Origin: Sphaerodactylus townsendi | Taxonomy: Eukaryota | NCBI RefSeq assembly: GCF_021028975.2 | Contig: NC_059438.1 | Location: 35,960,001 to 36,024,000 of the forward strand | DNA: 64,000 nt | Direction: 5' to 3' | In this document: positions 1 through 54,281 of the stretch, one piece after another | Position numbering within the stretch: position 1 is the first letter of the stretch | Layout: each line of letters begins with the position of its first letter | Position numbers and translations under genes: made by a program | The notes under the pieces: generated by a model | Told to the model about the DNA's origin: nothing | Databases searched by the model: none | Seen by the model: the letters and a program-made list of their open reading frames with translations, nothing else

Positions 1-620
1 AGGCGGGCTGACGACTGCCGAGCCCCGCCGCCGCCGCCGCCGCCGCCGCGAAGCCCCTTCCCCGAAACGGCCCCCTCCCTCTCGCGCCCGGCGCGGGGGC
101 GCGCTCGACGGCCCCCCGAGCACCCCCGGGCGCAGCTGCAGCGGCGGGCAAGGGGAGCGCAGCGCAGCGCAGGCACCCTCAACCCCCTCCCTGCAGGGGA
201 GGCCAGGGGGAGGGGCGGGAGCAGAGGGGGGACCCCGGGTGCGGGGGGGGGGAGGCTCACCTTGCCGCAGACGTCCGGCTCGAGCCCGCTGCGCGTCGGC
301 GCTGCGCTCAGGATCAGGCTGGGCTTCAGGAAGACGAACTCGCTGACGTCCGAGACCGGCGACAGGCAGGAGCGGTAGCCCCGGGCTGGGGGTCCCAAGC
401 AGGCCACCTGCACCCCGATGGGCGCCTCGCCCGGGCTCAGCTGGTAGTGGCACTGCTCCAGCATGGGGTCCAGCGGGTCCTGGAGCATGCCGCCTTGGCT
501 CCTGCAGCAGCCGAAGGGGGTTGGGGGTCGGCAGGCCCCCGGGCGGCAGCAGCGCACCCCCAGGGCCACCAGAGCCATCAGCGAGATGGTGGAGATGGCG
601 GCCAAGGAGATGATCAGGTA
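1..620. promoter_or_regulatory. CpG island over the 3' end of the last variable exon and its downstream intron, with a (GCC)n run at about 26-49
   Basis: Very high GC and abundant CpG in 1-620, much higher than the 5' part of the same exon. Confidence 0.7.
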
Positions 621-2699
621 GACAGTCACCATGGGGGGCCCCTCGCTCTCCTCCGACTGGGCAGTCAAGCCCAGGAAGGCTTCCGGGCCGCTCTCCTCCA
701 GGAGCACCACCACAGTGACGGAGGAGGACATGGCAGGCTCTCCAGAGTCTCTGACCACCACCACCAGCTCCTGGGTAGGGTCGTCCAGGTCTTGCAGGCC
801 CCGCGTGGTCCTCACCTCCCCGTTGCGCAGGGCCGTGCTGAAAAGGCTGGGGTCGGTGGCTTGCTCCAAGTGGTAGGAGAGCCAGGCGTTTCTCCCAGAG
901 TCCAAGTCCACGGCCATAATTTTGGTGACTAAGGTGTTGGCGGCGGTCGACCGGGAGATCCTGAACTGCATCGCGGAGTCTTTGGCCATGAAGGGGAATC
1001 GGATCCAGGGCGCATTGTCGTTCTGGTCTAATAAGTAGATGTGCGCCATGATCCGGTTGCACAGAGGGGGAGAGCCTCCGTCGCAGGCCTCCACCTGGAA
1101 CCGGAAATGGTTGAGCTGCTCATAATCGAAGGGGCACTCTGCGTACACTTGCCCGCTTGTGGGGTTGATGGAGATGTAAGAGGTCGGGTCCTCCACTCTC
1201 TGCCGCCCAGGGCTGGCCAAAACCGAGTAAGAGAGGCGGGAGTTTTGGTCTTTGTCGGCATCCGCCGCCGAAACGGTCAGAAGGACGGCCCCGATGGGAT
1301 TGTTCTCCTCCAGGATCACTTCGTAATAAGACCTGTCAAACTGAGGCGGGTTGTCGTTGACGTCGGCGAGGGTGATGGAGAAAGACATGTACTGGGAGAA
1401 GGAGGGGTTTCCCAAGTCAAAGGCGTGAACGGTGACGTTGTAGTGCGCCACGCTCTCCCGGTCTAGCTGTTCGCTGGTCAGCAAGGAATACTGGTGCTCA
1501 AAGTCCTTCCGAAGTTTGAAAGGGAGGTTTCTGGGCAGGTCACACTGAACCTTCCCTTGATCGCCAGAGTCCTGGTCCTTGACGTGGATCACGGCCACCA
1601 CAGTGCCGGGAGGCGCGTCTTCGTTGATGGAGCTGGAAAATGAGGTAAGGACAACTTCGGGGGGGTTGTCGTTCACATCCGTCACTTCCACCACGACGCT
1701 GCAGTGCTCTTCCATTGTGGGGGAGCCCATGTCCGTGGCCTCCACTTCGATCTCATACACGCTGGACTCTTCAAAGTCCAGGTTCCCTTGGACACGGATC
1801 TCTCCTGTGATGCTGTCGATCGCGAAGGTCTTGCGCAGGGTTTCTGAGTTGTGGCTGCTGAGGGAGTAGCGGATTTCCCCATTAGGCCCTTCGTCCCGGT
1901 CTGTTGCGTTCAGCTTGATCACCAGCGTCCCCAGGGGGGAGTTTTCGACCAAGCGGGTGTGGTAAGCGGGCTTGTCAAAAACGGGGTGGTTATCATTGGC
2001 ATCCAGAACTTGGACGGCGATTTGGATTGTGCTCGACTTGGGGGGTGAGCCGCCATCTTCTGCTGTCAGGACTAAACGGTGAACTGCTATGTGCTCTCTG
2101 TCCAACAGGTTCTCCAGGACCAGCTCCGGGAACTTGCTGCCGTCCGTGCGTGCCTTCACGTTGAGGTTGAAGTTCTCGTTGGCGCTGAGGTGGTAAGTCT
2201 GCAGGGTGTTTGTTCCCACGTCCGGGTCCTGCGCGTGCGGGATGGGGAAACGGGCGCCCAGCGCGGCCAGCTCATAGATCTGCAGGGCGATCGCGCTGCT
2301 GGAGAATTCAGGAGCGTTGTCGTTGATGTCCAGGATCTCCACTTCGATGCGATAGAACTCCACGGGGTTTTCGATCGCCAGCTTAAGATGCAGGAAGCAC
2401 CGCAGGTTGGGCCCGCAAAGCTGCTCTCTGTCTATTCTGTCACTGACTATTATGATCCCGGTGTTCACGTTCACAGAGAAGTACTGGGAGTCGGAATCGG
2501 AAAGCACCTGCAGGTTGGCAGCGGCCAGCTTTGCCACATCCATTCCTAAGTCCTTAGCAACATTTCCCACAAAGGATCCCCGAGTGAGCTCCTCTGGGAC
2601 AGAGTAACGGATCTGTGCAGCAGAGCCACTCAGAAGCAGCCAGAGAGAAAAGGCATGCAGGAGTCCCAGACGCCAGGCAGAGTTTTCTGTTCTGAGCAT
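261..2699 (-). CDS. Protocadherin-gamma C-type variable exon, an additional (fourth) C-type exon downstream of gammaC5; 813 codons; signal peptide, EC1-EC6, TM, variable cytoplasmic domain
   Basis: Manual minus-strand translation from ATG 2699: MLRTENSAWRLGLLHAFSLWLLLSGSAAQIRYSVPEELTRGSFVGNVAKDLG...DRIDREQLCGPNLRC...EILDINDNAP...DANDNHP...DVNDNPP...DQNDNAP...AVDLDSGRNAWLSY...TM VTVYLIISLAAISTISLMALVALGV...YRSCLSPVSDVSEFVFLKP...DVCGK. Donor AAG|GTGAG at 261/260; length 2439 nt is divisible by 3. No in-frame stop from 260 to 1, which explains its absence from the ORF track. Confidence 0.93.
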
Positions 2700-2879
2700 C
2701 TTTCTGATATCCACAGCAGGAAGCAATAACACTGCAAACCGGGAGCTATAGATAGCAGACAGTATTTCTTTAAGCCCCTGGAGGATTCACCGCCTATCTG
2801 GAAGAAATGTGAAACAACGGAGAGAACAGGGGGACTGTGATCACTGTTTACCTCTCTCATTCATTGTTTTGGTTTGAGA

Positions 2880-3020
2880 GAGATTGATACAGCTGTAGAG
2901 GGGAGTGGTGCGCGCCGCCCGATCTTCAATGTTAGCCACCCAGCCATTGGCTGAGACGGCCTCCCCCTGCATCCAATCAGGGGCCTCCGTCTCAGGACAG
3001 CAACACACGCACCAATCCAA
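2880..3020 (-). promoter_or_regulatory. Putative CSE-less promoter of the extra C-type exon, with three CCAAT/ATTGG boxes
   Basis: ATTGG 2946-2950, CCAAT 2973-2977 and CCAAT 3012-3016, about 250-320 bp upstream of ATG 2699; no CGCTGTT-type CSE seen. Confidence 0.45.
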
Positions 3021-3488
3021 GTGTGGAAGTTGCTACTGTGCAAAAAAGGACCGCGTAACCTGCTGTTTTTAACCTAGAGACACCAGGCTAAACGGCAGAA
3101 CAATGGGAAACAAAGCCCCCAAACCGACGGGGGGCTTTGATTTCTGCCCCAGCTACAAGACCCTTCTGAAGTAGCGGAAGCGGCAAAAGGCCTCGCTGGC
3201 TTTGTAAGCTCAGCCCGAACCCGCTTCTTCTGTCTGTGAACGGCTGCTTTGGGGGGGAAACAATGGGAGAGAAGCAATTCTGCTATAGTTAGAAAGCCAG
3301 AGAAGCTAGAAAGCTTCCCAGTCAACCAACTCCGCTCGCTTTAGACTTCAAATGCATAACATTCTCAGGAAAAAAATATATAATCTAAGTACATTTTTAG
3401 CAGCAAGGGCTCTTGCTGTCCTAGAAACATTACAGAAGTGTGTGAGAGCTGGATTTGTGACAGGCAGCTTCTGAAGGACAGCCTATTC

Positions 3489-3619
3489 CAGTGGTGGCGA
3501 ACCTTTGGCACTCCAGATGTTATGGACTACAATTCCCATCAGCCGATTGGCCATGCTGGCAGGGGCTGATGGGAATGGTAGTCCATAACATCTGGAGTGC
3601 CAAAGGTTTGCCACCACGG
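3489..3619. mobile_element. hAT (Charlie/Buster-type) palindromic MITE
   Basis: TIRs cagtggtggcgaacc...ggtttgccaccacgg; 8-bp TSD gcctattc at 3481-3488 and 3620-3627. Confidence 0.9.
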
Positions 3620-3870
3620 GCCTATTCACAGTAGCCAAACTTTTGCATCCTCTGAGGGCCTTTGCCAGTTAACAGGCAAGTTTGGTGCACGAAGTAACCC
3701 CAAATAATATTTTGGGACACCCCGACACTCACAGGGAAAAAGCCAGCCATACAGACTGGGCAGTTTGCCCGGCCATCACTACAGTTGCCAGTCCCACGGA
3801 CTAACTCTGGTTGAAGCAGCTCTCTCCCTTTGTGTATTTTGTGGAGGAAGGAGATAGAAATTACACCCTT

Positions 3871-3975
3871 GTATTGTTAAAGGCTCTCACAGCCGGAATC
3901 ACCGGAACATTGTGGGGTTTCTGGGCTGCATGGCCATGTTGATGGCCATGCAGGCCAGAAACCCCACGACACTCC
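3871..3975. mobile_element. Short palindromic Penelope-derived remnant
   Basis: Starts gtattgttaaaggctctcacagccggaatc like the copies at 28312, 29146 and 49280; inverted halves; flanks aattacaccct/aattataccct (TSD-like). Confidence 0.6.
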
Positions 3976-4149
3976 AATTATACCCTCAGTTCACTGACTC
4001 AGCCCCTCATGAATCCCTCCACCAGAACAGTGCTGGATCAGACCACGCAAAAACTGCTCCCACCCCACTCAGGCAACATGTGAACAGTCAGGCTGCAAAG
4101 GCTTTTTGTAGAATTGCTAGGAGAAAAGAAATAGAAAACGGGACCTCAC

Positions 4150-6597
4150 CTGCAAGGAATGGTTCAGTGTATTGGTTCGAGACACGAAAGAATCATAGTC
4201 CCTTGTTAGGGTGCTTGACGGGGGGTAATCCACAGGCCTCATGAAGGTGAAATCGCTCCGGTCAGATCCTGGGGAGTAGCTGGCCCTATAGCCCTGGCTC
4301 TCCGAGTCCGTGGGCCTCAGCGTGACCTCCATGTATTTCAGAGTGCCATCGGAGTTCAGCTGCAGCTTGGGGGTAGACTGTTTGAAAACGTCCCTGGCAG
4401 GAACGTCACCTAGGCTGCAGCAAGAGGCATCTCTGCGCCTTTTACTCCAAAAGCATTTTGCAGACAGGACGATGAAAGTAATGATGGACACGATGCTCAC
4501 AGCCACCAGCGCGATGATCAGGTAGAAGGTGAGGTCCAGTTTTTCTTTGGGTTTGGTCAGGAAATCTTGAAGTTGAGGTCCTTCCTCGAAGACTTCGTCC
4601 TCCAAAGAAACCAAGATGGTGACGGTGGTGGACAAAGAGGGGTCTCCGTTGTCCTTCACCAGGACAAGGATTTTCTGGGCAGTGAGATCTGTTTCCTGGA
4701 AGTCTCGGACAGTCCGGACTTCCCCCGTGTGGGGAGCCACTTGGAACAGGGAAGGGTCTGTGGACTGCGGAAGCAAAGAATAGGACAGCCAGGCGTTATG
4801 GCCGGAGTCTGCATCCACCGCTGTGACTTTGGTTACTATATAGCCTGCCGGGGCAGACTGAGGGATCCTTTGGAGCGCAGACAACTCCTGGCCAATCACT
4901 GGGTGCAAAACAGTGGGGGTGTTGTCATTCTGATCCAGTACGAAGAGATAGACGGTGACGTTGGAGCTCAGCTGGGGTGACCCAGCATCGTGGACAGTGA
5001 CAGGGATTTGAAGCACCTGGAGCGCCTCATAGTCAAAAGTGCGCTGGGCATAAATGTTCCCATTGTCTGGGTTGATGTAGACAAAGGAAGAGACAGGGGC
5101 GTCTTGGATCCAACTCCCTGACACCAGGTAAGTCAGCTGGGAATTGTCGCCCTCATCAAGATCTGAAGCCACTACTGTGCACAACAGGGAGCCAGGTGGG
5201 TTGTTCTCCTTCAGGAAGGAGTTGTAGAAATTCTGGGAGAAGGACGGGGCGTTGTCATTGACGTCTGAAATGTTCAGCACGATAATGACATCTGTGCTTA
5301 GAGGGGGGGACCCCGAGTCTCGGGCGGTCATTTTGATGGTGTATTGAGAAACCAGCTCTCTGTCCAGCTTCTCCCGGGTCATTAAGGAATAGTGGTTTTC
5401 AAAAGATTTAATTTTAAAAGGGAGCTTTGGCGATATTTCTAAAACCACTTCGCCATTGGCCCCCGAATCGTGGTCTCGTACATTGAAAAGCCCCACCACT
5501 GTCTCCAAGGGGGTGTTTTCTGGCACTGGGTTTACTAGGGACGTAAGGAGGAACTCGGGGGCGTTGTCGTTCTCATCCTCGATTTCCACATGGATAACAC
5601 AGTGGCCTTCCATTTGTGGAACACCCTTATCTCGGGCCCTCACATGGAGCTCATAAGAACGGGACTCTTCAAAATCCACGTCTCCTCGGACGTGGATCTC
5701 ACCTGTGTGGGGGTCCAAACCAAACAACTTCTGGATGGAATCCGACGTGTGGATTCCGAAGGAGTACTGTATCTCTCCATTGGACCCTTCGTCCGGGTCG
5801 GTTGCATTGAGCTTGAAAAGCAAAGAACCTACAGGGATATTCTCCGGCAAGGTGACCTTGTACACCGGGAGATCGAACGCCGGCTCATTGTCATTGTTAT
5901 CAAGGACCACGATGGTCAGTTGAGCTGTTCCAGAGAGGACAGGATCCCCCCCGTCGTGAGCAGTCAGTATGAGCTGGTGTTCCGGCTGCTGCTCCCTATC
6001 CAAAGGCTGCTCCAACACCAGCTCGGGCAATAGCTTGCCGTCCTTCACATTCTTCACATTGAGTGAAAAGTGGGGGTTGGGGCTGAGTCGGTAGGCGCTG
6101 ACGGCATTGGACCCCACGTCGGCATCATGCGCGCTCTCCAGTGGGAAACGAGCCCCTATGGGGGCAGACTCGGCTATTTTCAACAAAAGCCGGGGGGTGG
6201 GGAACCGGGGGGCATTGTCATTCAGGTCCAAAATCTCCACTTCCAGGTGAAACAGTTCCAGGGGGTTTTCTATGACCACTTGGACTGGCAAGAGGCACAC
6301 TAAGCTGGCTCCACACAGGCTCTCCCGGTCTATCTTTTCGTTCACCAGAAGGGACCCACTGGCCAGATTCACGGCAAAGTACCTTCTGTTCTCCTCAGCC
6401 AGCCTCAGCCTGCGGCTTGGGAGATCTGCCACCGTCAAGCCCACATCCTGAGCCACCTTCCCCACCGGGGTCCCTGGCTCCGACTCCTCCACCACAGAGT
6501 AGTGGATCTGTCCTGCGACCAACGCCTGGCCAAACAGCAAAAATAAGCCCGGTACTTGCCATTTGGACGAAGGGTGCCAAGACCAGCACAGCTCCAT
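4150..6597 (-). CDS. PCDHGC5: Protocadherin gamma-C5 variable exon (816 codons)
   Basis: The ORF track start at 6642 is TTG; the first ATG is 6597 (MELCWSW...KWQV). C5-diagnostic stretches: YSVVEESEPGT, KIDRESLCGAS, KDGK-PELVLEQ, NAWLSYSLLPQST, DGTLKYMEVTLRPTDS, SDFTFMRP. Donor CAG|GTGAG at 4150/4149, phase 0. Confidence 0.93.
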
Positions 6598-8294: not shown

Positions 8295-8417
8295 TTCTAG
8301 GGGTAGAATGAAAGTCAAGACCAGTAGCACCTTAAAGACACTGGACAATTTTGTGGATCTTTAAAGTGCTACTGGACTGGAAATTTTATGCATAGAGAAT
8401 AGAATTTGTTGTCTCAC

Positions 8418-10871
8418 CTCATTGGGTTCTCGGGAGAGACTTCCAGCCAGAAGAGTATCCGTATTGGTGATATCCCGTTGAGTAAAGGGCTTTGCAATCC
8501 TGAAATTTCCCCCTTCTGGCAAGAGGGTTTGGCCAGATCTTAGGAGAGGAAAGTGAGAAACAGACTCCCTCCCGATGAACGCTGCTGGGAACTCCATTTT
8601 CTCATCTGGGCTCAAGTTCACTGGGAAAGTGTCAAAGTGTCTTGGCACGGGTACAGAGTTCCTTCCCTTCGCGTCTCTGGCCCAAGAAGCATCCAAGGGC
8701 CTCCTCCTCAATCGCTGGAGGCATTTAGTAGCTAAAAACGCAAAAGTCAAAACAGCAAGGACGGAGATTGCTACCACAGCAATAATAAGATGCAAGGTGA
8801 TGCGGGACAGCCCGTCTGGTTCCACAGTGGCCTTCCTGAGGTCCGCCAGGCCGGGCTCATGCCCATGTTCTATATTCAGCAACAGAGTCGCGGTGGCAGT
8901 TAGTGCTGGTTTCCCATTGTCCAGGATCACCACCACAAGCTCCTGGGAAGGGGAGTCTTGTTCCAGAAAAGGGCGGAGCGTTCGGACCTCTCCCGAGTAT
9001 GCCGAGACTTTGAAGAGGCTGGGGTCCGTGGCCTGTTGCAGCTTGTAAGAAATCCACGCATTCAGCCCGGAGTCTGCATCCACAGCTGTCACCTTGGTTA
9101 CTAGGTACCCTTCCTGTGCTGAGAAAGGAACTGGCTGTTGGGCTAGGACACCCTCCCTGGTCACCGGGTACACAATAAGCGGAGCATTATCATTCTGGTC
9201 GACAATGAAAATGGAGATGGTTGCGTTGGTGCTCAAGGGAGGAGAGCCACTGTCTCTTGCTTGTATCTGGAAAACCAGCTGCTGCGTCTGTTCGTAGTCA
9301 AACGAACAGCCGCTGTAGATGGTGCCGTTTTCTGTGACGTGGACACAGGAGGAAATGGGGACTCCATTAACACTATGCTCCACCAATGAGTAGGACAACT
9401 GAGCATTCTGGCCCAGATCGGGGTCAAAGGCAGATACAGTAATGATTGGTACCCCCAAAGCATTGTTCTCGCTCACAAGAGCCTGATAGGCAGGCTGTGA
9501 GAAGGAGGGCGAGTTATCGTTCAGGTCAGAGATGTTTACAAGCAAATGGCGCTGGCTGGAAAGAGGTGGAGAACCAAAATCTGTAGCCATGATTATAACA
9601 TTGTACTGGGATATCTCCTCCCGATCCAGAGGGCCACTGGTGATCAAAGAGTAGTGGTTCTTGAAAGAGGGGACAATTTGGAAGGGGACATCTGCAGGAA
9701 GATGAAGCTGAACTTCCCCATTTTCCCCAGAATCTCCATCACTGACTTTGAGGAGGCCCACTACGGTACCAGGGAGAGCATCTTCTGGTACGGTAGTGGA
9801 GAGAGAAATGAACTCAATCAAAGGCGTATTATCGTTCAAATCTGCTACCTCCACTAAGACATTGCAGTGAGCATCCATGGAAGGTGACCCTTGGTCTTTA
9901 GCCCTTACGTCAATCTCATAAGAAGTGGCCGCCTCACAGTCCACGTTTCCCAGAACTCGTATCTCCCCAGTCTCTTCGTTCAGGCTGAAGATCTTACGGA
10001 TTTTCTGGGAAGTGTGGCTGCTGAAGGAATAGGTCACTTTCCCGTTGGGTCCCTCGTCCTTGTCTACAGCATGCAAATGGACAACCAGGGTTCCCAGTGG
10101 GGCATTTTCTAGCAGGCTAACTTTGTACACTGACTGATTAAACACAGGGGAATTATCATTGGCATCAATAACGGACACCACGATCTCAGCAGTCCCAGAT
10201 CTAGCTGGAGCTCCTCCGTCCAGCGCTGTAAGCACCAATCGATGACTCTGCTCCTCCTCTCTATCCAGCGCCTTCTCCAGAATCAGTTCGGGATGTTTGC
10301 TGCCGCCTTTATGAGACTTAATGCTCAGCGTGAAGTGTCCGTGGGGGCTCAGCTGGTAGGTGCTGACCGAATTCGTGCCGATGTCCAAATCCTCGGCGCT
10401 CTCCAGGGGGAAGCGGGTCCCTGGCTTTGCAGACTCCGCAATCTCCAAACGGGTGAGGCTGTTGAGGAAAATGGGGTCGTTGTCATTCACATCCAGGATC
10501 TCTATTTCCAGTCGGTGGGAGGCTGTGGGGTTTGATAGCAGGAGCTCTAGATACAGCAGGCAGCGCAAGCTGGGCCCACAAAGTTGCTCTCGGTCCAGCC
10601 GTTCCTTGACCACCAAGACCCCGCTCTGAGCCTCGGCTTGGAAGTACTTCTCCGCGGAGCCAGCCACGATCTGCAGCTGTCGGGAGCCCAACCGGGCAGC
10701 GTCCAGACCCAGGTCTTTAGCCATATCCCCAACAAGGGCCCCAGGTGCTAGTTCCTCCAGTATGGAGTAGCGGAGCTGTGTCATCTCTCCAGCGCTCCGG
10801 AGAGAGACAGAAACCAAAAGCCAAACACTTACTTGCCACGGCAGAAATGGTCTTTCTGTGGGAGAGAACAT
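8418..10871 (-). CDS. Protocadherin-gamma C-type variable exon in the C4 position (C4-like, divergent); 818 codons
   Basis: Track start at 10883 is TTG; first ATG is 10871. Six cadherin repeats with DxNDN linkers, TM, cytoplasmic part. SFDYEQTQ, PSLFKVSAYSGEVRT and SRITLHL resemble mammalian C4, and it lies between C3 and C5. Donor GAG|GTGAG at 8418/8417. Confidence 0.9.
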
Positions 10872-11076
10872 GATGCCGACCAAAATGTCTCCTCCCTTCG
10901 CCGGACCTCTGTCTTCTCCGATCCCAACACATCCAAGGAAGCAACAGAAAATTCAATTTTAGATCACACAAGGACTAACAAAGCTGCGCGCCATCTGCAT
11001 CGCTTATCTTGTTTTTCCACGGAGAATGGAACAGCAGCCACGAGTCTGTCCCAGAATCCGGAGAGGAGGGACTTGG

Positions 11077-16007: not shown

Positions 16008-17050
16008 GCCTAGGGTATCTGCTGGTGTAGGTGTGGTTCCACAGCACCTGGCAAGGAACTGCAGTACAACATCCATATAGATTGATCGGTTTTTACAAGC
16101 CCACACACCGCATCGTTTCTGGATTATCTCATAGTTTCATATAAATGATAAGAAGATACATAAATACCTCACACACCTACTCGTTTCTCTTATAAATATT
16201 AAATGAGTCCACCCGTGAAAGCTGCTAACCAAGCTTCCCTTGAAATTATAACAAAGAGTCCATAATGCCAGGGCCCTAGAATTTCCAGTTTCTCTAGGGT
16301 CTGTAGGTTTAAGCTGCAAAGTGACACAGAAGTGGGGCCCTACATGCTTCGTAGGTTTTAACGTACAGTCATAAGCAGCTTAGACCCTACAGACCTTTAG
16401 GCCCCTCCCTTCAATACAGTTTCCCCCCCTCCGTATGGCCTACTTCTTGTTGGGTTGGTATATCTGCCTCGGGGATATTCCATTTTAGACTGCAGATGGG
16501 TAGATTGCAAAGGGGGAGGGGGGACCCCCGTACATAGAAAACTAGCATGTCAGAAAGCTAGGAGGGAATGCCAAATGAAACAAAAAGGAAGATGCCAACA
16601 GGAGCGCTCTGGAATTCTCTACCCAAGGAAATTCGTCTGTCGCTTTCTGTTGCCGACTTTGGCCAGCGGGTGAATTCTTTTGTGTTTCATTTAGCATTCC
16701 CTCAGTGATTCCCTCTCTAACCAATGCTTTTAAATGTTTTGCATGTGTTTATAACTGTTTTGTATTTACTTCATTTTTAAAAATACTCTTTTCTAATTTG
16801 TTTAAACGAACTACGTCTAAGAGGAGAGGTGATGTTAGTGGCCTTAAACATCATTTTATCGTGTACGTTTTAAATTGTTAGCCACCTTGGCGGATCTTGT
16901 CAGGGCAGGGAAGTGGGATATACCTTCTGTCAATAAAAGAAAATAAACATGCCTTCTGCATAGTTTTCTATGTGAAGGGAATGGGGGGGGGGAGGTGACA
17001 ACACCAGGTGAGCCACTGGCTTGCAATCTGGTGCAACTCAAATACAGATT

Positions 17051-20876: not shown

Positions 20877-21364
20877 TTATAGGTTGTTTTGCTTTAGCAG
20901 TCTGGGAAAACCACCCAAGCAACAGGGCACCAAGCATTCTTTCAATATATATTCTTATTAAGAAATCCATTAGATTATATACACAGTTTTTGTCTCTTTA
21001 CAGTCCTCTGGGCCTGTGGAGCCTCCCCTTGATCCCCATTACAAAACCAGAAACATTGAAATTATCCATCAGAGGCGTCAGTGTGTAGCTCAGCCACCGC
21101 AGGCCACGTAATCAGCTCCCACTGATTTAGGAACCGTTACCCAAAGAATTCTGGGAACCAACCAACTTCATCCAAAGGGAATAACACAAGGAAATGAACA
21201 GGGGGGTTAAACAGGGGGCTCTTGATAATAAACGCAAACAACACATCACCTGGGACAAGAGAAACAGGTTTCATGGGAACAGTGGTCTGCCTCCTAGTCA
21301 ATGCACGATCAGAATTGTGTTTTCCAGACTTTGTAGGACAAAAAAAAAGAGGAGAATACGTTAC

Positions 21365-23794
21365 CTCGGAGGGCACCAGATGCCTACTGTTTGTGCCCGT
21401 TATCTGGTTCGCTATTGCAGGATCGCATCTGGCGAGAGTGTTCTGGCAGCTACCCAAGGGACTGGGGGTAAAGGGCATTTTGTACAGAAGTTCGCTCTGA
21501 CGGGAGTCAGTAGTGAGGACCTGCTGGTAGAAGTGCGGAGGAGCAAACCCACTCCGCACGGTGTCTATGTGGTTGAAAGGTCCCGGGGTCCTGTAAAGGG
21601 TGCTTCTGGAGGCCTTGAATATATCCTTGGATCGCCTCCACTTGTAGAATTTGTAAAGGCCCACCCCGAGCACTGTGAGAAAGAAGGCCACCGAGATCAA
21701 GATCACAGCAAGGATTAAATAGAAAGTCAAGTGCTTCTTCGTTTGGGGCGCGAGGGGCATCATCGCCAGGTCTGTAAAGGTCTCCCTAGACGCCTCTGCT
21801 ACCGTTACACTGAGGGTCACGGTGGCGGATAAGGCCGGTTCCCCGTTGTCTTTTATTAAGATGACCAACGTTTGCTGGCGGGAGTCTTCCGCCTGCAACG
21901 AGCGAACTGTGCTGACCTCCCCGGAGTGCAGGCCCACTGCGAAGAGGCCCGGGTCCGTGGCTTGAAGGAGCACATAGGAAAGCCAGGCGTTGTAACCGGC
22001 GTCCGCATCCCACGCCACAATCTTGGTGACCATGTAGCCGGGGCTGACCGTGGGTGAGACGGTCTCTGGAAGCAAAGAACTGCCATTTGCACGCGGGTAT
22101 AAGACTTGGGGCGGATTGTCGTTTTGATCCGTGACAAATACGCTGACCGTGAGGTTAGTGGCGAGGGGCGGGGTGCCCCCGTCACGGACTTGGACCACCA
22201 TCCTGAACTCCATTATATCCTCATGGTCCAGAGGCACTAAGACATAAATAGTACCGTTGTCCCGATTGATGGAGAAGTACCTGCCTGCCAGATCGCTCGA
22301 GGCCTTATTGCTGTCCAGGATGGAGTAGGAAAGGTGGGCGTTCCTGTTCAGGTCTGGGTCAGAAGCACTGACATTAAGAATCAGGCTCCCGGGTGGGTTG
22401 TTCTCTTCCACATACAGGTCGTAGGAGGGCTGCGGGAATTGGGGCGGGTTGTCGTTGATATCGGCCACTTTCACCAGCACCTGCTTTTCCTCCACGAGAG
22501 GAGGCGAACCCCCATCCCGGGCCGTGATGGTGATGTTGTACTCCGAGACAAGCTCCCTATCCAAGGGTTCTTTGGTTTGCAAGGTGTAGTAGTTTTTAAG
22601 CGAGGAGCTAAGGGCAAAGGGGATGCCGGACGGTATAAAGCAGTGGACCAGTCCGTTGTCACCGGAGTCCTGGTCGGTGACGCTCAGCAAGGCGATGACG
22701 GTCCCCGGCGCCGCATCCTCGGGTACCGGACTGTACACCGAAGTGACCGTGATTTCTGGGGTGTTGTCGTTCGCATCCAGGATCTCCACCTGCACTTTGC
22801 AGTGCGCCACGGCGGGATTGGCCCCCTTGTCTTTGGCCTGGATGTAAATCTCGTAGGCCTTGGCCTCCTCGAAATCCAGGGAGCCCTTGAGCCGCAGCTC
22901 CCCGGTGGCCGGGTCCAGGCCGAAGAGCTGGCGGACCCGAGCCGGGGTGTGGCTGCTGAAGGAGTACAGGATCTCGCCGTTGGGGCCCTCGTCCAGGTCG
23001 ACGGCGCGGGGCTGGGCCACCAGGGAGCCCACGGGGGTGTCCTCGGGCAGGCGGGCGCTGTAGACGGAGCGGTTGAAGACGGGCGCGTTGTCGTTGGCGT
23101 CCAGCACGTCGACCAGCACCTGCAGGTCGGCGGAGCGCGGGGGGCTGCCGCCGTCGAGGGCGGTGAGGGTCAGGCGCAGCTGGGGCTGCCGCTCGCGGTC
23201 CAGCGCCTGGCGCAGCACCAGCTCGGCGTACTTGGTGCCGTCGCCGCGGGCCTGCACCTGCAGGGCGAAGTGGGGCTCGGCATTGCTGAGCAGGTAGGTC
23301 TGCACCGCGTTGGCCCCGACGTCGGGGTCGTGCGCGCTCTCCAGCGGGAAGCGCGCGCCCGGCGCCACCGCCTCGCTGACCTCCAGGCGCGCCTGGCGGG
23401 CGGGGAAGGCCGGCGCGTGGTCGTTCACGTCGCGCACCTCCACGGCCACGCCGAACAGCTCCAGCGGGCTCTCGGCCACCAGCTGCAGGCTCAGCACGCA
23501 CGGCCACAGCGCCCCGCACAGCGCCTCCCGGTCCAGCCGCTCGCGCACCGCCAGCCGCCCGCTGCCCAGCTCCGCCGCGAACAGCCCGCGCCCGCCGGCC
23601 TCCACCAGGCGCAGGTTGCGGCCCGGCGGCGCCGGCACGGGCAGGCCCAGGTCAGCCAGCAGGTCGCCCACCGGCGAGCCCGGCGGCAGCTCCTCCGGCA
23701 CGGCGTAGCGCAGCGAGGCCCTCGCCAGCCCCAGCGCCAGCCACGCCGCCGCCGCCGCCGCCAGCAGCAGCCGCCGCGCCGCCCCGCCGCTCAT
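21365..23794 (-). CDS. PCDHGC3: Protocadherin gamma-C3 variable exon (810 codons)
   Basis: ATG 23794. C3-diagnostic stretches: EVSEAVAPGARFPLESAHDPDVG, EIYIQAKDKGANP, EITVTSVYSPVPEDA, SSLKNYY, RYFSINRDNG, LYRTPGP, LTTDSR, QNTLARCDP. Donor GAG|GTAAC at 21365/21364. Confidence 0.95.
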
Positions 23795-24200
23795 CGCCTC
23801 GCCCGGCCGCCGGGCAAAGTTGCGCGCGGCCCGCTACAAGTTCCCCGCCGGCCCGACCGGCCGCCGCTGCTCCTCCGGGCCGCGCCTCCCCGGCTGGCCG
23901 CTCCGCGCGCGCATGGCTCTCCGCGCCGGCCCCTCCGACCGACCCGCCGAGGCGCTCCACGCCGTCTGCCGCTCGCCCGCCGCTCGGCGCCGGCCCACTC
24001 GGCGCGCCGGCCCCCGCCGGCATCCCTGGGTCAACAGCGGCGCGTAGAGTCCCGCCCGATAACTGCAGCGGGCCGGCCGGCCGGGGGTGCGCCAGAGGGC
24101 CCGCCGGAGCCCCGGAGCGCGCCCAGCCAGGCGGGACGCGCCCTGCAACCGCGGAAGCAGCCGAGCCACGCAAGCGGGAGTCGCTATCCAAGAAGGAACA
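22850..24200. promoter_or_regulatory. CpG island over the gammaC3 promoter and EC1-EC3
   Basis: Extreme GC and CpG density, falling sharply in the 3' half of the exon. Confidence 0.85.
24027..24067 (-). promoter_or_regulatory. Pcdh conserved sequence element (CSE; CTCF site) of gammaC3
   Basis: Minus strand TGCAGTTATCGGGCGGGACTCTACGCGCCGCTGTTGACCCA: upstream TGCAG module plus CGCT core, about 235-270 bp upstream of the ATG; aligns with the CSE at 54241-54281. Confidence 0.85.
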
Positions 24201-54240: not shown

Positions 54241-54281
54241 TGGCCAACAGCGGCACTTAGAGTCTCAACTGGAAAACTGCA
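54241..54281 (-). promoter_or_regulatory. CSE (CTCF site) of the gammaB-like exon
   Basis: Minus strand TGCAGTTTTCCAGTTGAGACTCTAAGTGCCGCTGTTGGCCA, about 240-280 bp upstream of the ATG. Confidence 0.88.

Follow-up and report, generated by a model that had tools for sequence, protein, structure and literature searches.

The closest described counterpart of the element studied here comes from the anole, in which Jiang et al. (2009; PLoS One 4:e7614, PMC2764143) reported seven c-type protocadherin (Pcdh) genes: alpha-c1, alpha-c2 and gamma-c3 to gamma-c7. Anole gamma-c3 and gamma-c5 are orthologues of human genes, and gamma-c4, gamma-c6 and gamma-c7 have no direct human orthologue (PMC2764143). 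That comparison, which covered human and coelacanth only, left gamma-c6 without an interspecies orthologue and identified Ac-gamma-c7 as orthologous to coelacanth Lm-gamma-24; RT-PCR on anole brain cDNA confirmed the splice sites of variable and constant exons (PMC2764143). The authors proposed that the gamma-c group, with five members in the anole, was shaped by differential loss and not by duplication (PMC2764143). An extra C-type exon is thus already known, having been published in the anole in 2009. Here we analyze a 64,000-nt stretch of Sphaerodactylus townsendi DNA (the window) and, on its minus strand, a Pcdh-gamma variable exon that a sequence-only reading had described as a fourth C-type exon downstream of gamma-C5. 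With a probability of about 0.88, this is the variable exon of gecko protocadherin gamma-c6 (hereafter c6), orthologous to Anolis Ac-gamma-c6 and fourth in a series of five C-type gamma exons. It is indeed the fourth, but gamma-c7 follows outside the window and makes five, so c6 is not the last variable exon.

The c6 exon and its anole counterpart

We compared the window with loci from Heteronotia binoei (L001), Anolis (L002), the marsupial Dromiciops (L004) and Rhea (L005), and with an overlapping S. townsendi locus record (L003; GCA_021028975.2, CM037627.2, 35923317-35976597, reversed), in which a position equals 10001 + (6597 - window position). Exons were compared separately. The region studied contains no N stretches.

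The relatives found include a Heteronotia binoei sequence labelled 'gamma-C5-like' (90% identity) and Anolis DAA06629.1 (D0IQ79_ANOCA; 80%), which GenBank lists as 'TPA_inf: protocadherin gamma c6 isoform [Anolis carolinensis]'. An all-versus-all identity matrix gave the target exon 80% identity with Anolis c6 and 90% with its positional equivalent in Heteronotia. Every paralogue falls at 42-46%, the window's gamma-A/B exons among them, and the adjacent gamma-C5 exon stands at 43%. The target and Anolis gamma c6 are each other's best match, at 80% against a paralogue level of 42-46%. Three window exons pair one-to-one in this matrix: the target with c6, the exon at 4150-6597 with c5, and the exon at 8361-10883 with c4. 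The c7 exons of Anolis and Heteronotia match one another, and the window contains no equivalent of them.

Gene order agrees with these pairings. The 3' end of the S. townsendi gamma cluster reads C3, c4, C5, c6, (c7), constant; four consecutive exons, c4, c5, c6 and c7, are present in both Anolis and Heteronotia; and models at the Rhea locus start at C5, c6 and c7, in that order. The position of c6 between gamma-c5 and gamma-c7 is therefore kept in Anolis, Heteronotia, S. townsendi and Rhea. The window ends 260 bases past the c6 donor, placing gamma-c7 beyond its edge; in Anolis, Heteronotia and S. townsendi, c7 lies ~0.4-0.8 kb downstream of c6. Constant exon 1 (QAQPVNTDWRFSQAQRPGTSG) is found at L003 23209-23271, ~6.9 kb downstream of c6 in the same orientation, with an acceptor (cag|CAA GCA CAA at L003 23209) in phase 0 that matches the phase of the c6 donor. 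The c6 exon ends in K followed by GT in S. townsendi, Heteronotia and Anolis, and models from Anolis, Zootoca, Gavialis and Rhea join c6 at the same residue to QAQPNTDWRFSQ of constant exon 1.

The features of the exon, all on the minus strand, are:

261-2699: coding part of the Pcdh gamma-c6 variable exon; 813 codons, ATG at 2699, last codon AAG at 261-263
2616-2699: signal peptide, aa 1-28, as read from the sequence and not by a predictor; cleavage would fall before QIRYSVPEE
642-2615: ectodomain EC1-EC6 (extracellular cadherin repeats), aa 29 to ~686; Cadherin_2 plus five Cadherin stretches
558-632: transmembrane (TM) helix, ~aa 690-714; the sole Kyte-Doolittle window above 1.6, maximum 2.48
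261-557: variable cytoplasmic segment; weak Cadherin_C_2 match and the SPxSDxSxFxF tail motif common to gamma-C5
255-260: 5' splice site GTGAGC, abutting the last codon, phase 0
1-254: start of the intron, GC-rich; the reading frame is open by accident to the window edge

Two neighbouring exons and one farther upstream are referred to below:

4150-6597, minus strand: true gamma-C5 variable exon, immediately upstream of c6 in transcription order
8361-10883: squamate gamma-c4 variable exon, paired with c4 in the identity matrix
21140-23794: gamma-C3 variable exon, best match to the gamma-C3 EC1-3 structure 4zi8

Translation of window positions 2699 to 261 on the minus strand is stop-free across 813 codons from the ATG, and the exon ends ...GGC AAG followed by GTGAGC, with the donor in phase 0 at 261/260. 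In the target exon, Pfam detects Cadherin_2 at aa 29-111 and, with E 3.8e-79, five Cadherin stretches; its match to Cadherin_C_2 is weak. The two exons upstream of c6 have an identical Pfam architecture. The six EC repeats are bounded by five DxNDN linkers at aa 124, 233, 341, 446 and 558. The mature N-terminus, QIRYSVPEE from aa 29, aligns with residue 1-2 of solved protocadherin ectodomains, and aa 29-670 align with the solved gamma-B4 EC1-6 structure. The exon thus has the composition of a clustered-Pcdh variable exon, in which one large exon encodes a signal peptide, six EC repeats, one TM helix and a short cytoplasmic segment. It is also placed as a C-type exon, in the last variable block before the constant exons, and groups among c4, C4, C5 and c7 when gamma-A/B exons serve as outgroup.

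The sequence-only reading had proposed the 813-codon frame with signal peptide, six cadherin repeats and TM helix, and translation, Pfam, linkers and hydrophobicity bear this out. The phase-0 AAG|GTGAG donor it described is present as AAG|GTGAGC. It had also called the exon hidden from the open reading frame (ORF) track, and this holds: the ORF list excludes frames that run off the source, and c6 is missing from it because its frame runs open through the GC-rich intron off window base 1. In L003 the same frame closes at 16607, giving a 913-aa ORF. The exon is not hidden from public annotation. For the S. townsendi assembly, NCBI has a model with its start at L003 13899, equal to the ATG at window 2699, and a product of 858 residues, so c6 is already modelled there. 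Other NCBI models in L003 start at 5727 (squamate gamma-c4) and 10001 (gamma-C5), and window 4858-6597, in the adjacent exon, is 100% identical to 'protocadherin gamma-C5-like isoform X4 [Sphaerodactylus townsendi]'. The suggestion that the exon might carry a C5-like name in other non-mammals was correct, as 'gamma-C5-like' labels are seen in other species.

The ratio of nonsynonymous to synonymous substitution rates (dN/dS) for c6 is 0.088 against Heteronotia (synonymous divergence dS 0.56) and 0.086 against Anolis (dS 1.33), with an overall range of 0.086-0.118; values for gamma-C5 are alike, at 0.10-0.11. At ~0.09, these rates indicate that c6 is under purifying selection. Since the ratio of 0.088 against Heteronotia was obtained at a dS of 0.56, constraint lasted beyond the split of the two geckos.

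The 5' region and a possible route to expression

The 450 bp upstream of the c6 ATG are 92% identical when two geckos and Anolis are compared. Synonymous sites in the exon, by contrast, reach a dS of 1.33 between gecko and Anolis, so that the c6 promoter region is by far the better conserved of the two. Two features stand out, both on the minus strand:

2700-3150: conserved 5' region (promoter and 5' untranslated region, UTR) of gamma-c6; 92% mean column identity across two geckos and Anolis
2946-3018: three-CCAAT module, with ATTGG at 3012-3016, ATTGG at 2973-2977 and CCAAT at 2946-2950; invariant in the squamates compared and in Rhea

Within the module, a 26-mer, GGATTGGTG-N4-TGTTGCTGTCCTG, lies at window 2993-3018 and occurs exactly once each in the window and in L001, L002, L003 and L005; in the marsupial locus L004 it has no match within 3 mismatches. 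Rhea keeps the promoter core: a 73-bp stretch holds two ATTGG and one CCAAT, and a GC box and AAACAATGAATGAGAGAG are present as well. The CCAAT boxes suggest that c6 may be under NF-Y-type control.

Promoters of mammalian gamma-C4, gamma-C5 and alpha-C2 reportedly lack the conserved sequence element (CSE), a finding said to come from Wu and colleagues in 2001. In an operational test that used the window's own motif, no CSE-type block was found within 3 mismatches upstream of c4, C5 or c6. Together with the two ATTGG and one CCAAT in 2946-3018, this is in line with the CCAAT-rich, CSE-less upstream region that had been noted from the letters. The block itself, GACTCTA-N3-GCCGCTGTTG, occurs on the minus strand at 24032-24051 and 54245-54264, ~190-240 bp upstream of gamma-C3 and of one gamma-A/B exon, giving two matches against 0.18 expected by chance.

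Other elements were seen in this part of the window. At 2790-2875 on the minus strand, GAGAG|GTAAAC and TTCTTCCAG|ATAGG resemble a donor and an acceptor ~70 nt apart, and geckos and Anolis may share a small intron here in the 5' UTR of c6; the acceptor side of this candidate is not conserved in Rhea. Between C5 and c6 lie two palindromic inserts, one at 3488-3620 whose 57-nt arms are 95% complementary and one at 3895-3984 whose 43-nt arms are 79% complementary. Rfam gave no family at gathering score in window 1-4200.

We propose that the c6 exon has its own promoter, with three conserved CCAAT boxes and no CSE-type motif, and that transcription from it would continue across c7, the next exon downstream, and the intron. 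Cis-splicing would then join the GTGAGC donor (window 260) to constant exon 1, ~6.9 kb downstream, as for every clustered protocadherin. The resulting type-I membrane protein would carry six cadherin repeats and one TM helix, followed by a juxtamembrane tail specific to the isoform and the constant tail common to gamma proteins, and its EC1-EC4 would confer a homophilic specificity unlike that of C3, c4, C5 and c7. By analogy with its relatives, c6 is thus predicted to be transcribed and spliced in S. townsendi, to be expressed in neurons and to have a binding specificity of its own. If it behaves as a C-type isoform, its neuronal expression would be broad and biallelic, not stochastic.

Age of the lineage and the mammalian C-type genes

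We built maximum-likelihood trees (LG+G4) with gamma-A/B exons as outgroup; a quick mixture-model tree (posterior mean site frequency, PMSF) agrees on all clades cited here. The c6 clade has support of 100/100 and comprises the target, Heteronotia, Anolis, Zootoca, Varanus, Gavialis, Carettochelys, Rhea, Corvus, Brachypteracias, Pleurodeles (two copies) and Ambystoma. It contains no mammal, and it is separate from the tetrapod gamma-C5 clade (gecko C5 and four mammals), sauropsid c7, squamate c4 and mammalian gamma-C4. Identity to the c6 orthologues of salamanders, turtles, a crocodilian and birds is 59-72%. Judged by these trees and identities, c6 is a separate ancient lineage, dating at the latest to the last ancestor that salamanders share with amniotes.

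The target is not the orthologue of mammalian gamma-C5. It is 44.6% identical to marsupial gamma-C5 and falls in a separate clade; the gamma-C5 exon of the window is 62% identical to marsupial gamma-C5 and sits in the C5 clade with the mammals. Solved mammalian ectodomains give a consistent picture: against mouse gamma-C5 EC1-3 (4zpn) the adjacent exon scores 457 bits versus 335 for the target, and against gamma-C3 EC1-3 (4zi8) the exon at 21140-23794 scores 387 bits versus 312. With gamma-C4 EC1-4 (7jgz), all five C-type exons score 422-464 bits, the target 427. Its similarity to the mammalian gamma-C4 group is at the level of a paralogue, and its position differs.

The Dromiciops locus carries gamma-C3, gamma-C4, gamma-C5 and three constant exons. 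In tblastn searches with gecko c6 and lizard c7, nothing was found between gamma-C5 and the constant exons of this one marsupial, the mammal in which the interval was checked (12.5-31 kb, E <= 1e-3); the matches on the locus were the three C exons alone, at 43.5-46% identity. Gene order and the missing promoter module make absence of c6 from mammals the likelier reading.

Mammalian gamma-C4 has a survival function in mouse. An alternative we consider improbable is that it is a fast-evolving orthologue of c6, in which case the lineage was not lost in mammals. Mammalian gamma-C4 does have a long stem branch (0.63) and lacks a clear orthologue outside mammals, and neither gene was given a direct orthologue by Jiang et al. 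(PMC2764143). The approximately unbiased (AU) test does not reject c6 and marsupial gamma-C4 as one clade (delta lnL, the log-likelihood difference, 15.4; p 0.16). Squamate c4 plus gamma-C4 fares equally well (p 0.16), however, and gene order favours this pairing, with gamma-C4 on the upstream side of C5 and c6 on the downstream side. The free tree instead places gamma-C4 beside the C5 clade (95/94), or the clades join in a polytomy. When marsupial gamma-C4 was used as query, its best 120 relatives were mammalian orthologues at 88-99%, followed by gamma-C5-type and fish proteins at 50-55%; none of the c6-clade protein ids found with the target as query was among these 120. The 427 bits of the target against gamma-C4 EC1-4 are no better than the scores of the C5, c4, c7 and C3 exons, and the marsupial locus lacks the c6 promoter 26-mer. 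The sequence-only reading had found mixed motifs in c6, C4-like MEEHCS (aa 329) and AVDLDSG (aa 596) together with a C5-like tail, YRSCLSPVSDVSEFVFLKP (aa 775). All three are present and the tail is common to gamma-C5, but a motif check showed that MEEHC is not in marsupial gamma-C4 and that AVD.DSG occurs in most paralogues. As an observation on gamma-C4 itself, no non-mammalian relative exceeds 55% among its best 120 matches. Squamate gamma-c4 (window 8361-10883) and mammalian gamma-C4 (L004 5786-8446) share name and position, and are 49% identical in separate 100/100 clades.

To the idea that c6 is a squamate- or gecko-specific duplicate of gamma-C5 or squamate gamma-c4 we give practically no credence. 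Automatic names do say 'gamma-C5-like', and the SPxSDxSxFxF cytoplasmic motif is common to gamma-C5. Against this, c6 shares just 43-46% identity with C5 and c4 of S. townsendi itself, a level that gamma-A/B exons reach as well; its orthologues at 59-72% extend to salamanders, turtles, a crocodilian and birds; and the c6 and C5 clades, each at 100/100, each hold S. townsendi's own member. A forced c6 plus C5 clade was borderline rejected by the AU test (p 0.043). The identity matrix and trees contradict a lineage-specific duplicate, and the earlier view that the protein is distinct from C5 and not a recent copy of it stands, with 42-46% identity to all paralogues and a 100/100 clade of its own, outside those of C5 and squamate c4. 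It is also very unlikely that the exon looks intact but is out of use in S. townsendi, for lack of either transcription or splicing to the constant exons. Next to it, gamma-c7 is disrupted in this assembly; the c6 donor, ATG and promoter module, by contrast, are intact and conserved, and dN/dS remains 0.088 against Heteronotia at a dS of 0.56.

Some observations weigh against the reading of this exon as gamma-c6. When two mammalian gamma-C4 sequences and more fish were added to the tree, six 100/100 clades joined in a polytomy. Gamma-c7 is disrupted in the S. townsendi assembly at L003 16831-19228 (~0.5-2.9 kb beyond window base 1): S. townsendi has 58 unrelated nt in place of the 51 nt that encode a conserved EC1 segment, VVHERLDREALCRASPT, in Heteronotia c7, and both an in-frame TGA and a frame change are seen there. 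The remainder is 95% identical to Heteronotia c7, and NCBI has no model there. This could be a true pseudogene or an assembly error in very GC-rich DNA. Finally, ~15 kb of nearly pure G (14120 G in 15300 bases; L003 26421-41708) lie between constant exon 1 and a truncated constant exon 2, a stretch that looks like an assembly artefact. It cuts the constant region, and all Pcdh-gamma models of the S. townsendi assembly therefore carry ~45 constant residues instead of ~133; the annotated c6 model, with its 45-residue constant part, is among them.

The claim that c6 is ancient, kept in reptiles and lost in mammals holds in substance. Its age is supported from salamanders to birds, and there is no mammal in the clade and no relic in the marsupial interval. 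Its loss is likelier than not but unproven, given the polytomy and the AU p of 0.16 for c6 plus gamma-C4. A fuller account, which we put forward tentatively and at somewhat less than even odds, is that c6 is a tetrapod-ancestral C-type Pcdh, spanning salamanders to birds, that has its own deeply conserved, CSE-less three-CCAAT promoter with a 26-mer exact in gecko, anole and rhea, that it was deleted without trace in the mammalian stem, and that with c7 disrupted it is the last intact variable exon in S. townsendi. If this is true, sauropsids would be a natural system with two extra constitutive-type Pcdh-gamma isoforms, whose roles might include one such as the survival function of gamma-C4 in mouse.

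Public models and comparison with known systems

Many public models named 'PCDGM', 'gamma-C5' or 'gamma-C3' are chimeras of adjacent variable exons, in birds (including Buteo), Terrapene, Varanus, Chelydra and Chelonoidis. Some consist of c6 for their first 330-500 residues and c7 for the rest; the Chelydra model joins C5 to c6, and the Chelonoidis model c4 to c6. About 45 bird clusters of 909-934 aa are adjacent-exon chimeras. Such c6/c7, C5/c6 or c4/c6 models from birds, turtles and monitor lizards could mislead automated orthology calls. A different error affects Heteronotia XP_060110480.1 (972 aa, L001 10001-12919), which is an unspliced c6 read-through and not a spliced isoform; it carries a 54-residue upstream extension and ~100 intronic codons.

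Our analysis adds to published work the salamander orthologues, the CSE-less three-CCAAT promoter conserved from gecko to rhea, the lack of a marsupial relic, and the chimeric models.

Among known systems, mammalian PCDHGC4 (7jgz) resembles c6 as a C-type gene with a long stem branch and no clear one-to-one orthologue outside its own class. It differs in its 44.5% identity and its place upstream rather than downstream of C5, and the c6 promoter module is not in the marsupial locus. Mammalian PCDHGC5 (4zpn/4zpo) is likewise a C-type gene at the 3' end of the cluster, with no CSE-type promoter motif and with the SPxSDxSxFxF cytoplasmic motif, but it is 43-45% identical to c6, lies in a separate 100/100 clade and has its true orthologue in the adjacent exon at 4150-6597. 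Sauropsid gamma-c7 shares with c6 the status of a C-type exon without a direct human orthologue (PMC2764143) and without a match in the marsupial C5-to-constant interval; it is 43-44% identical to c6, forms its own clade and is found beyond the window edge, in disrupted form in the S. townsendi assembly. The closest system is Anolis Ac-gamma-c6, which matches the gecko exon at 80% amino acid identity over its whole length, in its position between gamma-c5 and gamma-c7, in the K|GT at the exon end, and in an upstream 450 bp that is ~92% identical. What sets the present case apart is the species, here a gecko, and the extension of the orthologous group to salamanders, a turtle, a crocodilian and birds.

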